Positions 15,081 through 50,177 of a stretch of DNA of 64,000 bases are shown piece by piece (position 1 is the first letter of the stretch; each line of letters opens with the position of its first letter). The stretch comes from Octopus bimaculoides. Lineage: Eukaryota. The notes beneath the pieces are model-generated. The model saw nothing but the letters and a program-made list of their open reading frames with translations. It ran no database searches and was not told where the DNA came from. The stretch is taken from contig NC_068981.1 of NCBI RefSeq assembly GCF_001194135.2, positions 80,787,473-80,851,472 on the forward strand. Reading direction: 5' to 3'. The position numbers were made by a program, and so were the translations under genes.

Positions 15081-15605
15081 ATTTCTTTATTATCCATAAA
15101 GGGCTATACAAAGAATTTTTTAAGACATCACAAAACATAAAGACAGTACAAAACGCAAACATAAAATCGGGGTAATTAAAATAAAATGATAATATGCAAG
15201 AATGAAAAAAATGAGGTGCAATGTCCACTCGATCCCCAAAGTCGGGTGGTCACATTTANNNNNNNNNNNNNNNNNNNNNNNNNNNNNNNNNNNNNNNNNN
15301 NNNNNNNNNNNNNNNNNNNNNNNNNNNNNNNNNNNNNNNNNNNNNNNNNNNNNNNNNNNNNNNNNNNNNNNNNNNNNNNNNNNNNNNNNNNNNNNNNNNN
15401 NNNNNNNNNNNNNNNNNNNNNNNNNNNNNNNNNNNNNNNNNNNNNNNNNNNNNNNNNNNNNNNNNNNNNNNNNNNNNNNNNNNNNNNNNNNNNNNNNNNN
15501 NNNNNNNNNNNNNNNNNNNNNNNNNNNNNNNNNNNNNNNNNNNNNNNNNNNNNNNNNNNNNNNNNNNNNNNNNNNNNNNNNNNNNNNNNNNNNNNNNNNN
15601 NNNNN

Positions 15606-16135
15606 ACGTGATTTGATTGACGTTAACTGTTTATATATAAATCACACACGTGATTGAATATCATAGTTTCTTATGAGAAATCGAAAATGCCTCGTGGAAG
15701 ACCGGCTGCACAACATCTTATTGTTGCTGAAAACGAAATCCTCACTCGTGAATTAATATTAGAGGAAAAATGGAAAATCTGTGATTTAAGCAGTAGCTCA
15801 AGATACAGAATGTTGGAATGGTGTGCGCGTCGTCGACTTATTAGAAATAAGTTTACCTGCGACGACTGTCTAGTACCATGCGGACTTATTACACGTGGTG
15901 ACAGAATAGATGGAAAAGAATGGTACTGTAAACAGTGTAAAAAAAAAGAAATCTGTCCGCTACAGTTCATTTTTTGAAAGGAGCCATATTCCACTCTTCA
16001 ATATTTTATAAAAAAAAATTCCGTCGCATGCTGTTTTAGAGAAAAAGTAGTACGGATAATACTGGTAAGTCGTTCAGTTATTTCCCTTGAATATTTTTAT
16101 TTATTTCTTTTACCTCTCGAAACTGGAAGATTACC
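15606..16135 (+). mobile_element. Merlin (IS1016/ISXO2-like) DNA transposon fragment
   Basis: ORF 15654-15977 LEWCARRRLIRNKFTCDDC...DGKEWYCKQC plus frameshifted KKSVRYSSFFERSHIPLFNIL is the typical N-terminal zinc-ribbon/'SIRxGSFFxxS' region of Merlin/IS1595 transposases; no DDE core is visible. Confidence 0.75.
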
Positions 16136-17051
16136 TAATCATTGTTATGTCCGTCCTTAACAACTGCAAATAATCAGTTCTAGGGGGTGGTGTCTCCACC
16201 AACCATATCCATTTCGTCATTATAATTTCACCGAGTTCTTCTACGCGCTCCCAGCAGCCTTCCTCAGGTATCAAAATGCATCTTTCAGCACATTTCTCTG
16301 GCATTTTCACTCTTATTACTTCTCCCAAACTCTCGACCCTTCTCTCCATCTGCGCGCAATTCTCGTACTTTATCAAAACCCCCTTGTATTTCACATCTTT
16401 CTCCGTTCTCTCCTCCTCTTCTTGTACATTATTAGTTTCTGGCTTTTTTATCTCTCTTTTGTTTTCTGTTGACCGTTCCTTTGACTTATTTTTCCTTTGC
16501 TTTTTAGGGTTAGTAGCTCCAGTTTCGTTCTTCTCCTTTGTTTTCTCTGTTTCACACTTCCATCTCTCTTTTATTTCCTCAGTGTGGTCTACAATTTTTT
16601 CCTCCTCTGCTTGTGCTATCTCTTGCTGTGGCTGTGTGAACAGTGGGTATTTGGTCTTCATATGACCTCTCTCCCCGCATATATGACAATTTGGTTTTCT
16701 TCCCTCGACTGCGACATTTAACGTTTTCTCTTCCTCCACTTCTATCTGGTAGGGAATTCTTTCTGTCCTCGAATGTGGCAAAAAGCCACATTTCGAGTCC
16801 AAATCCCCACCATTTGCACACTTTTGTTTTCGCTACTGGTCCCAATTCCGGCTCCTCCTTGGTTTCAGCCAGCACTGTTGCAACCAACCACTCTGGTTTA
16901 ATTTCTGGTGTAACTCTGGGATTTCGTATTTTCACCCTCTATAACTTGGTAGTAATGCTATTTTCTCACTTCTTAATATGTTGGTTGCATGCTTGGTTGC
17001 CTTTTCTATAGTGGCGAACCTCACCGCAGTGGCCTTGGCATAGCTCTCCAT
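16131..17051 (-). pseudogene. Degenerate, internally deleted ORF1 (gag-like CCHC protein) of E1
   Basis: MESYAKATAVRF...LLPSYRG...TPEIKPEWLVATV...VEGRKPNCHICGERGHMK...VIRVKMPE...ILIPEE; two frameshifts. Confidence 0.8.
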
Positions 17052-17203
17052 ACTGGAGACACTACCACTTGCCTTAGCTGGGAAAAAATGCAGTAGCTCA
17101 CGTGAACCGTAACCGTAATGATTTCACAAAAATCACAATTATTCACCGAGACAGTTTTCACAAAGTAACACAACAGTATTCACAATAATTCACAGAGACG
17201 TTA

Positions 17204-17256
17204 TACCGCGAAGCAGTTCGACCAGCGTGCTAACGTTTCTGCCGGCTGGCCGCCTT
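17204..17256 (-). mobile_element. SINE C 5' head (host of E1)
   Basis: Minus strand reads GGCGGCCAGCCGGCAGAAACGTTAGCACGCTGGTCGAACTGCTTCGCGGTAT. Confidence 0.85.
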
Positions 17257-48328: not shown

Positions 48329-48370
48329 GGCGGCGAGCTGGCAGAAACGTTAGCACGCCGGACGAAATGC
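48329..48370 (+). mobile_element. SINE C 5' head (host of E3)
   Basis: GGCGGCGAGCTGGCAGAAACGTTAGCACGCCGGACGAAATGC, preceded by the TSD copy AATGTGTATTGAAAT. Confidence 0.9.
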
Positions 48371-48455
48371 CTCGTGAGTTCACTGGTCGGACGTGTTATT
48401 ACTCGCTGCGATTTTTTTTTATTAACGCCACTATTTTTTGGTGGGCGTTGCTGAG

Positions 48456-49298
48456 ATGGAGAAAATGAAGACGTATGCAGCAGCGACGGGGAGTCGAGCT
48501 TCCGTCGTCCCGGGCCTGCTGAAGCAATATGAAATACATTGGAATGAAGACATGGCTGAGAAAATTGAAAAATATAAAGAAATGATAAAGAAGGAGGGGC
48601 CAAACGTAAAGTTGACCCCATCAGAGGAGGAAAAGACGAAAATGGAAATTGGAATCGTGGAGTATAAATCCTTTTCAAGGAAAAATAATAGAATAGAGAG
48701 TGCAACGAAGGAGGAGGTGGAGGAGTGTTTGAAGGAATTGGAAGAAGATGTGTTGTTTTTTACAAGAGGCAAGACATACGCGTCTGTAGAAATAACATTT
48801 GTATCAGAGGAGGCAGAAAATAAATACGCCAATAAAACACTAGCCAATGGAAATTGGATGCTCTTTCCTAATAAGTTGGGTAGATGTCCAACGTGGATTA
48901 GAGTGGGTAGGATCCCACCGAAAATAGAGTTGGAATGGGTAATGGCAGCAGTTTTTCCTGAAAGAGAAGATGTAAGGATAATTATGATAAGCAGAACCCA
49001 AAAAATAAACTGTTGGGGGTATGGATTGAATGTGCTTTTTATAGCAAGTCAGAAAGTTTATAGTGACATACCGGAGACACTGGAGCTGCCTAACGAGGAC
49101 AAAATGGACATAATGTTGGAGGGGAGACCTCCAAAGTGCTACGAATGTGGCAAAAGAGGTCACATTAGAAGAAGGTGCCCAGAAATAATGGACAACAAAG
49201 AAATGGAAACGCAAGAAGACGTGATAGAGGAGAGGAAACAGTCACAGGAAGAGGAGCAGATAACTGATTTTGAGGAAGCTAAATCAAGGAAGAGATAA
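48456..49298 (+). CDS. LINE ORF1-like (gag-like) CCHC zinc-knuckle protein of E3, 280 aa to a premature stop
   Basis: Open from ATG 48456; LEGRPPKCYECGKRGHIRRRCP is CX2CX4HX4C; aligns block by block with the E1 and E2 proteins. Confidence 0.8.
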   Translation: MEKMKTYAAATGSRASVVPGLLKQYEIHWNEDMAEKIEKYKEMIKKEGPNVKLTPSEEEKTKMEIGIVEYKSFSRKNNRIESATKEEVEECLKELEEDVLFFTRGKTYASVEITFVSEEAENKYANKTLANGNWMLFPNKLGRCPTWIRVGRIPPKIELEWVMAAVFPEREDVRIIMISRTQKINCWGYGLNVLFIASQKVYSDIPETLELPNEDKMDIMLEGRPPKCYECGKRGHIRRRCPEIMDNKEMETQEDVIEERKQSQEEEQITDFEEAKSRKR

Positions 49299-49938
49299 AG
49301 GAGTTCATCGCCGAAAGTCGAACAAGGGAAAAAATGCAAATCACAGGATCAAGTGGGATCACTGAGGAAAGACGATAATAGTAGCAGAACATTACCACAG
49401 AATCATACAGTCTCACAATCGCACAGACAGACAGATACACAGATGCATAAACGCACAGACATACATACACTCGGAAGCGAAGAAGATAACGCAGAGTTGC
49501 ACAGAACCTGAAAACACAAATACACAAACACAATATGCAGACTTACAGTCACACAAACATGCAGAATCACAGACAGATAAACACACAGATATACAGTCAC
49601 AAAGAAATATAGAACAGACGCATGGTAGTACAGAATCACAAAAACAAAAAAGAACAGACATACAGACGCAGGAGGTACATAGGAACGGCATATATTTGAT
49701 GTCATATCGATACACAGAAAAAATAGAGAAGATATTCAAAATAAAAGACATTGTCAAAGTGGACCTCTCGGACGGTTGCGATAAGGAAACGAGATGGATT
49801 TTAATAGAAAAAGAAGAGCATAAAAAATTAAAAGAGGCTTTCCCGACAGATATAAACCCACTGGGGCCCGTGGTGAATTTCGAACCCAGCGCTCCAGTGG
49901 TGAACTACGAAGAAATAAAAGATTATATGAAATGGTGA
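49299..49938 (+). pseudogene. Continuation of E3 ORF1: T/Q/H-rich linker plus conserved C-terminal domain
   Basis: Reads through after the stop (RSSSPK...), frameshifts near 49500 into the frame ending IVKVDLSDG...WILIEKEEHKKLKE...PVVNYEEIKDYMKW. Confidence 0.75.
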
Positions 49939-50177
49939 GTAGTTTTATTTTGGATAAATTATTGAGATAATTTTGAAAAGAACTATCGAAGACTGTGAAA
50001 GGAACTATTAAGAACTGTTGAAATAATTGAAATAACGCGGCCGCCCCGGGGTGGGGCTGGGGTGGCCGTCCCATCATCATTGTTTAATTTCATTGTTCCA
50101 TTCTATCATGTGTTAATTGTCCCCGCATGTGTGTATTGTCCCATCTGTGTTTAGCCCCTTATGGGTAATAAAGAAAT

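Follow-up and report, generated by a model that had tools for sequence, protein, structure and literature searches.

Long interspersed nuclear elements (LINEs) of the Tx1 clade include several that insert into other transposons; Tx1L targets Tx1D, and both Tx1-Mar and SINEU-3, a short interspersed nuclear element (SINE), target Mariner-N4_AMi (Kojima 2015, PMC4494074). Keno is cited there as targeting U2 genes (Kojima & Fujiwara 2004, as cited in PMC4494074). Non-autonomous partners of Tx1 elements share the target to 90%, 23% and 13%, and co-transcription with the target has been described (PMC4494074). Non-autonomous LINEs with only the first open reading frame (ORF1) and no ORF2 are represented by HAL1, HeT-A and Ag-Sponge (Kojima 2018, PMC5786205), HAL1 being a "half-L1" (Bao & Jurka 2010), and for R2 and R1, as summarized in PMC4494074, co-transcription with the target and homology-assisted 5' joining are known (Eickbush & Eickbush 2010; Fujimoto et al. 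2004, as cited in PMC4494074). Here we describe three elements, E1, E2 and E3, in a 64,000-nucleotide stretch of the Octopus bimaculoides genome (NC_068981.1, forward-strand positions 80,787,473 to 80,851,472; hereafter the window, numbered from its first letter), each of which carries an ORF1-like gene and lies at the same place within a copy of one SINE. In octopuses over 10% of the genome consists of SINEs, whose expansion is a hallmark of this lineage.

Three elements at one position of a SINE

The preliminary description of this DNA had placed all three elements inside SINEs at a single base, and the anatomy bears this out. The window contains three matches, each with at most one mismatch, to the junction string AAAGAAAT-N-GGTATTTCGTC (15069-15088 on the minus strand, 47491-47510 and 50170-50189), where 0.04 occurrences are expected by chance and none of 100 shuffled sequences reached three. 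At every one of them an element of 1.7-2.1 kb ends and the SINE takes over from position 48/49 onward, and each element lies between about the first 48 nt of a SINE and the remainder of that SINE. The 3' junction is identical in E1, E2 and E3, and the 5' junction depends on the lineage, at position 48 for E2 and E3 and at position 60 for E1. Identity to the general SINE consensus is 88-98% for the SINE halves, as compared with about 30% between the element proteins, and each host SINE has its own flanking duplication. The uninterrupted site, in which GAAATGCTTAGC runs directly into GGTATTTCGTC, is kept in five other SINE copies of the window. Chance or an assembly artefact as the cause of the shared junction is ruled out by the shuffles together with the read joints and E2 3'-junction reads described below; the sole assembly gap within an element is that at 15259-15605 in E1, and those at 27016, 35376 and 40976 lie between elements.

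E3 (48373-50177, plus strand) is gap-free and 1805 bp long, and is made up of a 5' untranslated region (UTR), an ORF, a linker, a C-terminal domain, a 3'UTR and a tail. Its ORF (48456-49298, gene model P0001) is intact and encodes 280 amino acids with a CCHC zinc knuckle at residues 227-243; it is 98% identical to UniRef entry A0A0L8HJ83_OCTBM, which is the gene model of the E3 locus itself. A Q/T/H-rich linker follows, then the C-terminal domain in a different frame (49693-49938) and the tail (about 50121-50177). The upstream SINE head (48329-48372, plus strand; 97.6% identical to the consensus) ends at 48370 in …GGACGAAATGC (...GAAATGC), after which CT stands in place of TTAGC. Downstream the SINE resumes at position 48 with TGGTGTTTCGTC… (50178-50339, plus strand; 89.8%); this half has a small internal deletion and a tail of the other type, ending …CTAGAGTAGAAAGAAT as in the E1 host. 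The host SINE is enclosed by a perfect 12-nt duplication, GTGTATTGAAAT, at 48313-48324 and 50340-50351 (both plus strand).

E2 (45819-47498, plus strand; 1680 bp, gap-free) has the same layout. Its ORF pieces (45947-46750) are broken by one frameshift and one stop, and are followed by a low-complexity linker, the C-terminal domain (47022-47273) and, beyond the 3'UTR, the tail (47441-47498). The head consists of SINE positions 1-48 and ends …GAAATGCTTAGC (45771-45818, plus strand; 93.8%), and the SINE from position 48 onward, CGGTATTTCGTC…, occupies 47499-47682 (plus strand; 96.7%). This host carries the same tail as the elements, termed type 1 (…GGGTAATAAAGAAAT), and ends …TAATAAAGAAAT. It is directly followed by AA and a second SINE that begins at position 17, GAATCGTTAG… (47683-47894, plus strand), and a 16-nt duplication with 14 identical bases encloses the host SINE and this truncated SINE together (5' copy TATTTTGTTACTGATT at 45755-45770, 3' copy TATTTTATTACTGACT at 47898-47913, both plus strand).

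E1 (15081-17195, minus strand) comprises a 5'UTR (17052-17195), a decayed ORF with frameshifts and an internal N-terminal deletion (16134-17051; P0003 is an intact relative) and a 3'UTR plus tail (15081-15258). Between the last two lie the gap and about 400 nt of unrelated sequence (15606 to about 16060), which most likely stems from a later insertion or from a mis-join. The order and orientation of the parts and the matching 12-nt duplications outside the host SINE suggest that both sides of the gap belong to one insertion; these duplications, GATTATTGGTTA at 17256-17267 (5' copy) and GATTATTATTTA at 14900-14911 (3' copy, both minus strand), agree at 10 of 12 bases. The head (SINE positions 1-48, 17208-17255, minus strand; 88.6%) ends ...GAACTGCTTCGC and is an E1-specific variant (…GGTCGAACTGCTTCGC). 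An extra copy of SINE positions 49-60, GGTATAACGTCT (17196-17207, minus strand), stands between head and element, and positions 48-60 are thus found on both sides of E1, a detail absent from the preliminary description; the extra bases resemble a 13-nt target duplication that arose long ago and has since become fixed among E1 elements. After E1 the SINE continues from position 48, CTGTATTTCGTC… (14914-15080, minus strand; 91.5%), to a tail of the other type (…CTAGAGTAGAAAGAAT). The unrelated piece within E1 holds an opposite-strand (plus) ORF of 96 Cys-rich codons (15687-15977, CxxC…CxxC) with no Pfam match.

The last approximately 55 nt of the elements, in a similarity that the preliminary description did not contain, match the 3' tail of one SINE subfamily (…TGTCC…CTCTATGTTTAGCCCCTTGTGGGTAATAAAGAAAT); SINE positions 185-226 are 93% identical to 50136-50177 in E3, and positions 171-226 are 81% identical to 47441-47498 in E2. 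By alignment the tail is kept in E1-E3, in one Octopus vulgaris copy and in one Logan copy, and it is retained in all three window subfamilies though their UTRs no longer align. Such tail sharing is the classic signature of a LINE/SINE partner pair. The host SINEs themselves differ in tails and diagnostic bases, those of E1 and E3 from that of E2. ARAGORN found no tRNA in the SINE and Rfam gave no tRNA match even at E values up to 10, nor any other RNA family; the box A/B-like sequence in the head is a resemblance by eye only. In the computed fold of the SINE RNA, positions 32-44 pair with 49-61 (13 bp including G-U pairs) around a UAGC loop, and the junction between C48 and G49 falls at the 3' edge of that predicted loop.

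The three subfamilies lie within 35 kb, with about 870 bp between E2 and E3, and three of the eight recognisable sites in the window are occupied, as compared with well under 1% genome-wide by read counts; this high occupancy reflects either local clustering or selection of the window for it. A 236-amino acid ORF beginning with ATG at 20618-21328 (plus strand) has no Pfam match.

Element-SINE junctions in raw reads

Junctions were examined in raw reads of run X24, of which about 1.5% was read, giving a depth of about 2 on single-copy flanks; the library is of ligation type with a palindromic linker and of low depth, and copy numbers taken from it are rough. A perfect 30-nt palindrome, AGGTTCGTCCATCGATCGATGGACGAACCT, continues many X24 reads at unrelated places, and looks like the bridge linker of such a library and not octopus sequence. 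SINE read depth is about 10^5. We used the intact full-length SINE with a type-1 tail at 39234-39451 (minus strand), in which C48 and G49 are 39405 and 39404, as the reference for read joints (39215-39453). Joints that connect the end of the type-1 tail to a place inside the SINE fall into two sharply defined clusters. One, 39404>39233, places the tail against G49, which is the site of the E elements (285 reads with 58 start points, plus about 90 in variants); the other, 39436>39232, places tail plus AA against G17 and is the commonest tail-to-internal-SINE joint among those listed (631 reads). The latter arrangement is also present in the window at 47672-47690 (GAAACGTTAGC), where the second SINE follows the E2 host. 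With a tail depth of about 8000, approximately 5% of tails abut position 49 and 10% position 17. The SINE dimers built of a tail, AA and a SINE from position 17 reflect either insertion at another hotspot or template switching at a constant place. Reads on the SINE plus its flank were uninformative, as a CA microsatellite swamped the outcome.

E2-like 3' reads (at least 88% alike) have a depth of 31-43 in the E2-specific 3'UTR; this rises to 54-62 over the tail and is 41-47 over the 12 SINE bases that come next. Twenty-five of them then leave the window sequence with the consensus TGTCTTTACGTTCTGAGTTCAAATTCCGCC (TGTCTTTACGTTCTGAG…), as against AGCCGTTACG… in the window host; they are still in SINE, of a subfamily other than that of the window host. 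The window E2 thus lies in a TGCCG-type SINE and most E2-like copies in a TGTCT-type SINE, and only six E2-like reads continue into something other than SINE. Of the E2-like 3' ends, at least 80% therefore enter a SINE at position 48/49, in at least two kinds of SINE host. E2-like 5' ends have a depth of 10-15, about one third of that of the 3' ends, which resembles the 5' truncation of LINEs, and about 9 of 13 of these 5' reads (about 70%) enter the SINE head. E3-like sequence has a read depth of about 50 (in a stretch confined to E3, where overrunning read ends are not listed). None of the reads on the E3 5' end plus 16 nt of head ran into the head, and there CT in place of TTAGC, a 2-nt gap near the end of the stretch, would stop any alignment.

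Reads at the E1 5' junction have a depth of about 130 that is flat across 17195/17196 and 17208/17209. The E1-specific AA in GGTATAACG is present in at least 90% of about 125 reads and the C of TTCGC in about 75%, and most E1-like copies have G where the window has T. The E1-specific head variant is common to about 85-90% of E1-like copies. Because these variants are common to most E1-like reads and the depth is flat, the SINE-like head and the extra positions 49-60 with it have become fixed in E1 elements and are passed on to their copies. The possibility that the 12 extra bases are a duplication private to the window copy is ruled out, since the whole lineage has them. Contigs of the RNA run X10 link the E1 5'UTR to the SINE head (records 12 and 14), and others cover an E3-like copy. 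Read depth is about 35 at 17100 and reaches about 138 at the extreme 5' end of E1 and the head; the head and the first 40 nt or so of E1 are present in many more copies than the remainder, and the 5'UTR is made of TGTGAA-type repeats. This rise could reflect a variable repeat number or a short derivative made of head and 5'UTR.

These reads show that the pairing of element and SINE is genome-wide, as the read joints and the E2 3' and 5' junctions all indicate. The preliminary description had treated both SINE halves as a plain target, and had named fixed SINE halves as a finding that would count against this; that view does not hold for the 5' half at E1, where head and 12 further bases are inherited with the element. 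Where PMC4494074 asks for more than 20% of copies with the same flank, we find three of three in the window, at least 80% for E2 3' ends, about 70% for E2 5' ends and about 85-90% for E1 5' ends.

The ORF1 protein family

The conceptual proteins of E1-E3 are collinear and 27-33% identical in pairs. They share an N-terminal M..SYAxAT motif, a folded region of about 150 amino acids, GRxPPEIxxEW, a knuckle of the form EGRxPxCxxCGxRGH, a low-complexity linker and a C-terminal domain (…ILIExExxxKLKExxxxxxxP.G). Searches of Pfam and of PDB sequences recognised the CCHC knuckle only (PF00098, 22.9 bits; zf-CCHC in 10 of 14 members), and Transposase_22, the L1-type ORF1 domain, had no Pfam match in any member examined. 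Three protein word-index searches returned just 2, 3 and 5 matches, since low-complexity words swamped the candidates, and the size of the family is visible only through an exhaustive profile search, in which a profile built from octopus sequences alone matched 697 cluster representatives, 244 of them at E<=1e-10. Intact members P0003, P0005-7, P0010, P0032 and P0035 have the same architecture, including the C-terminal LKExFPxDVG, and the ten longest matches are without a reverse transcriptase (RT) or endonuclease domain; three of these ten are gene models of mixed make-up that include WD40, LDL-receptor or astacin parts. We note that P0028, P0069 and P0124 are WD40, LDL-receptor class A or astacin/ShK proteins that hold a stretch of E ORF1, through either exonisation or chimeric gene models.

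The affiliation of the family is decided by a distant member, P0135 (E=1.7e-14 against the octopus-only profile), on the 3.5-kb contig L004. Its stop codon is followed, after 11 nt, by an ORF that matches Exo_endo_phos (PF03372) and has the human L1 endonucleases as its best solved relatives (E=4e-10). Because P0135 lies directly upstream of an L1-like apurinic-type endonuclease (APE) ORF, the E proteins are a LINE ORF1 family of the L1/Tx1 type. Membership of the Tx1 clade in particular is unproven, as L004 ends within the endonuclease and neither the window nor the loci contain RT sequence. An AlphaFold model of the E protein has a mean predicted local distance difference test score (pLDDT) of only 58 and contains two beta-alpha-beta-beta-alpha-beta units, and the Foldseek matches of this low-confidence model are weak (E 0.009-0.1) and are all proteins with tandem RNA recognition motifs (RRMs). 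"Type I" ORF1 proteins, the class attributed to Khazina and Weichenrieder in 2009, reportedly consist of one or more RRM folds and a CCHC knuckle; the predicted fold is compatible with an RRM-plus-CCHC ORF1 protein and proves nothing further. As a LINE ORF1, the E gene encodes a single CCHC knuckle, a low-complexity linker and a conserved C-terminal domain with LKExFPxDVG, and probably also a pair of RRM-like folds.

No APE domain (by tblastn) and no RT motif (by motif scan) was found in the window, which upholds the earlier statement that E1-E3 lack both, and with neither signal present no autonomous element was found there. The question whether full copies carry ORF2 had been raised in the preliminary description; E2, E3, the O. 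vulgaris copy at L001:9990-11776 and the copy on the Logan contig L002 all consist of a 5'UTR, ORF1, a 3'UTR of about 230 nt and the tail, and none of them has ORF2. The ORF1-only state is thus the norm across at least five subfamilies, and together with the position of P0135 next to an APE ORF this sustains the view of an ORF1-only family with a LINE-type ORF1. E1-E3 belong to a large, old family of non-autonomous retrotransposons of about 1.7-2.4 kb with one gene and no ORF2.

The O. vulgaris copy on L001 ends in the tail (…TATAATAAAGAGAAAC), which is followed by non-SINE DNA. Inverted copies of a stretch of about 140 nt lie on its two sides (L001:9750-9890 and 11310-11450), and a decayed APE fragment, 43% identical to the L004 endonuclease, lies about 3.5 kb upstream (L001:6224-6777); we rejected this fragment as the ORF2 of the E-like copy, as it is short, decayed and unlinked. 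P0058 (L002:147-842) reads TGA as Trp (…LFWMM…), so some cephalopod Logan gene calls used a TGA-reassigned code and read through real stops.

Possible routes into the SINE and known systems

Independent insertion into resident SINEs is, from the sequences compared here, the most economical reading. Among the readings weighed here we favour, at about even odds and on grounds of parsimony, one in which E1-E3 derive from a site-selective L1/Tx1-type LINE, keep ORF1 alone in the manner of HAL1 and insert between C48 and G49 of the SINE. The mechanism we infer comprises an ORF2 protein acting in trans, a site-selective DNA nick, co-transcription and homology-guided 5' joining. The same ORF2 protein, presumably from an autonomous L1/Tx1-type LINE, would copy both the E elements and the SINE subfamily, because they share the tail of about 55 nt; such a partner is plausible because L1-Tx1 LINEs are reported to be active in O. 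vulgaris, with 13 recently active families and 421 recent insertions (PMC13282606). Reverse transcription would be primed on the bottom strand of the SINE DNA between C48 and G49, and a fixed priming site would give the invariant 3' junction. The E RNA would start in the SINE head upstream of a master copy, so that new copies would inherit this head, and its homology to the target SINE's own head would allow seamless 5' joining, as for R2 and as suggested for the Tx1-dependent SINEU (PMC4494074). Insertion is favoured by the constant 3' junction at about 30% protein identity, the retention of the internal tail, hosts of several SINE subfamilies, the lineage-specific 5' junction (with the 13-nt overlap at E1 resembling a target duplication) and the location outside SINEs of the closest E3 relatives in O. 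vulgaris, P0050 and the L001 copy.

Several observations weigh against this reading. No autonomous element with the E tail or at the E site was found in the data reached, the host SINE is only presumed to be older than the insertion, and the copy numbers from X24 are rough. The predicted hairpin, when folded as DNA, is no better than that of shuffled sequence, and a cruciform at the target was dropped as an explanation for this reason. The related subfamilies represented by the L001 copy, L002 and L005 are not flanked by the SINE of E1-E3, and those from outside O. bimaculoides, the L001 copy and L002, are not in SINEs, so the family as a whole is not bound to the SINE. The majority of same-tailed SINEs also lie elsewhere than at position 49, and specificity therefore cannot lie in tail recognition alone. 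A precedent for such a contrast, at least 80% for E2 as against about 5-10% for SINEs with its tail, is given by the partners of one Tx1 lineage (90%, 23% and 13%; PMC4494074), which it matches. A rather doubtful variant, in which the element reaches the SINE by a route of its own, independent of the partner endonuclease, would explain why at least 80% of E2-like copies are at 48/49 as against about 5% of same-tailed SINEs. In one version the ORF1 protein, with its putative RRMs, CCHC knuckle and C-terminal domain, may bind the SINE hairpin and steer integration; in the other, copying would occur almost solely by a jump onto SINE cDNA at a fixed stall, and the element would be a parasite of SINE retrotransposition and not of the LINE directly.

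The junctions can also be read as products of RNA-level chimerism, in which an RT that begins on SINE RNA at a genomic nick proceeds inward from the tail, stalls at position 49 or 17 and jumps to the 3' terminus of another tail-bearing RNA, either an E RNA that already has its head or a SINE RNA, which is copied to its 5' end with a single entry into the genome. LINE reverse transcriptases are known to generate chimeras of the U6/L1 type. This route would account for two discrete joints, tail to G49 and tail plus AA to G17, both in the structured head region, for the one or two extra bases at them (C or T at 48, AA at 17) that are typical of template jumps, for the single 16-nt duplication around the E2 host together with the SINE truncated at position 17, and for a head that goes with the element lineage while the downstream SINE part varies; in keeping with it, none of the 15 joints listed for the reference SINE places a SINE start after TTAGC. 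It leaves unexplained, however, why the first head ends exactly where the downstream SINE resumes (48 in E2 and E3) and why E1 has a 13-nt overlap like a target-site duplication. Known chimeras have scattered and not fixed first-template switch points, a stall at the top of the hairpin after its 3' arm has been copied is unexpected, and at least 80% chimerism of E2-like copies would mean that the element almost never inserts alone; on balance we consider this route improbable, if not strongly so. A composite of head, element, rest of the SINE and SINE tail could instead move or duplicate as a unit descended from one or a few old insertions, its SINE halves staying SINE-like as promoter and RT recognition sequence. 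Spread of this kind and RNA-level chimerism would both lead to the arrangement that insertion gives. The fixed head of 85-90% of E1-like copies and the two junctions common to most E2-like copies are expected equally under such spread and under insertion, which is a further point against the latter, and every composite in the window has its own flanking duplication. A composite is also the refuting case that the preliminary description itself had set out. With a functional 3' end in the outer SINE tail, however, one would not expect three subfamilies to retain the internal tail of about 55 nt. Composites end in two different tail types, the window E2 lies in a TGCCG-type and most E2-like copies in a TGTCT-type SINE, the SINE halves are 88-98% like the consensus at about 30% protein identity, and P0050 and L001 outside SINEs argue that the association is not a single shared-derived state; spread as a unit is distinctly unlikely. 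Finally, an element-bearing SINE might convert other SINEs by ectopic gene conversion, without reverse transcription. With about 10^5 homologous targets this would yield identical junctions and inherited near flanks with different far flanks, but the 5' homology is just about 48 nt, E2-like 5' ends are about threefold rarer than 3' ends as in LINE-type 5' truncation, the ORF and an RT-recognition-like tail are conserved across subfamilies and species, and family members exist outside SINEs, all of which makes conversion very improbable.

If insertion is the correct reading, a protein-coding LINE derivative without ORF2 lands in a SINE whose head and tail it shares. This would be a natural case of a target-specific LINE with a co-transcribed small-RNA head, a proposed route to new SINEs, and would point to an L1/Tx1-type partner that mobilises one large octopus SINE subfamily. 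It makes testable a possible role of the ORF1 protein in target choice, and fixed-position template switching as a possible builder of SINE dimers. If the composite reading is true, the meaning is mainly one of caution for repeat annotation. In either case several octopus gene models, of WD40, LDL-receptor and astacin proteins, contain E ORF fragments.

The combination of a SINE target, a shared head and tail, and an inherited head appears to be undescribed in the searchable literature, a search to which Repbase and Dfam did not belong. Like Tx1-clade elements, the E elements have a 3' junction that is confined to a single position in a different, abundant repeat, both target and 3' tail are common to a non-autonomous element, the partners of one machinery differ widely in target preference, the element can be co-transcribed with its target (which for E we suggest only as probable), and an L1-like APE ORF adjoins the homologous ORF1 of the distant relative P0135. 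They differ in that the target is a SINE, one subfamily of which itself has the same tail, and in that they have ORF1, lack ORF2 and inherit a SINE head. With HAL1, HeT-A and Ag-Sponge they share the retention of ORF1 and absence of ORF2 in complete copies, a LINE-type 3' end, and a long-lived, diversified family in which some ORF1s are intact (P0003, P0006, P0007 and P0010). The E ORF1 is not an L1 ORF1, however, having no Transposase_22 and only zf-CCHC, and the elements have a specific tail instead of poly(A) and are tied to one nucleotide of a SINE, so they are HAL1-like in their workings and not members of that family. As in R2 and R1, upstream target sequence is carried at the 5' end (in the E1 lineage), and the 3' junction is precise and the 5' junction set by lineage (48 in E2 and E3, 60 in E1), whereas the E target is a dispersed SINE and not ribosomal DNA, the elements are non-autonomous, and their co-transcription and homology-guided joining are putative. 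Buzdin and colleagues are said to have described U6-L1 and similar chimeric retrocopies made by template switching; the dimers at position 17 are like these in that a complete RNA copy is joined to the 3' portion of a second retroposon RNA, in some cases through added bases, and a single duplication encloses the product. E differs from them in that its switch points would be fixed at two positions and in having a matching SINE head upstream of the element. Both ingredients of the E system, transposon-targeting Tx1-type LINEs and ORF1-only non-autonomous LINEs, are known.

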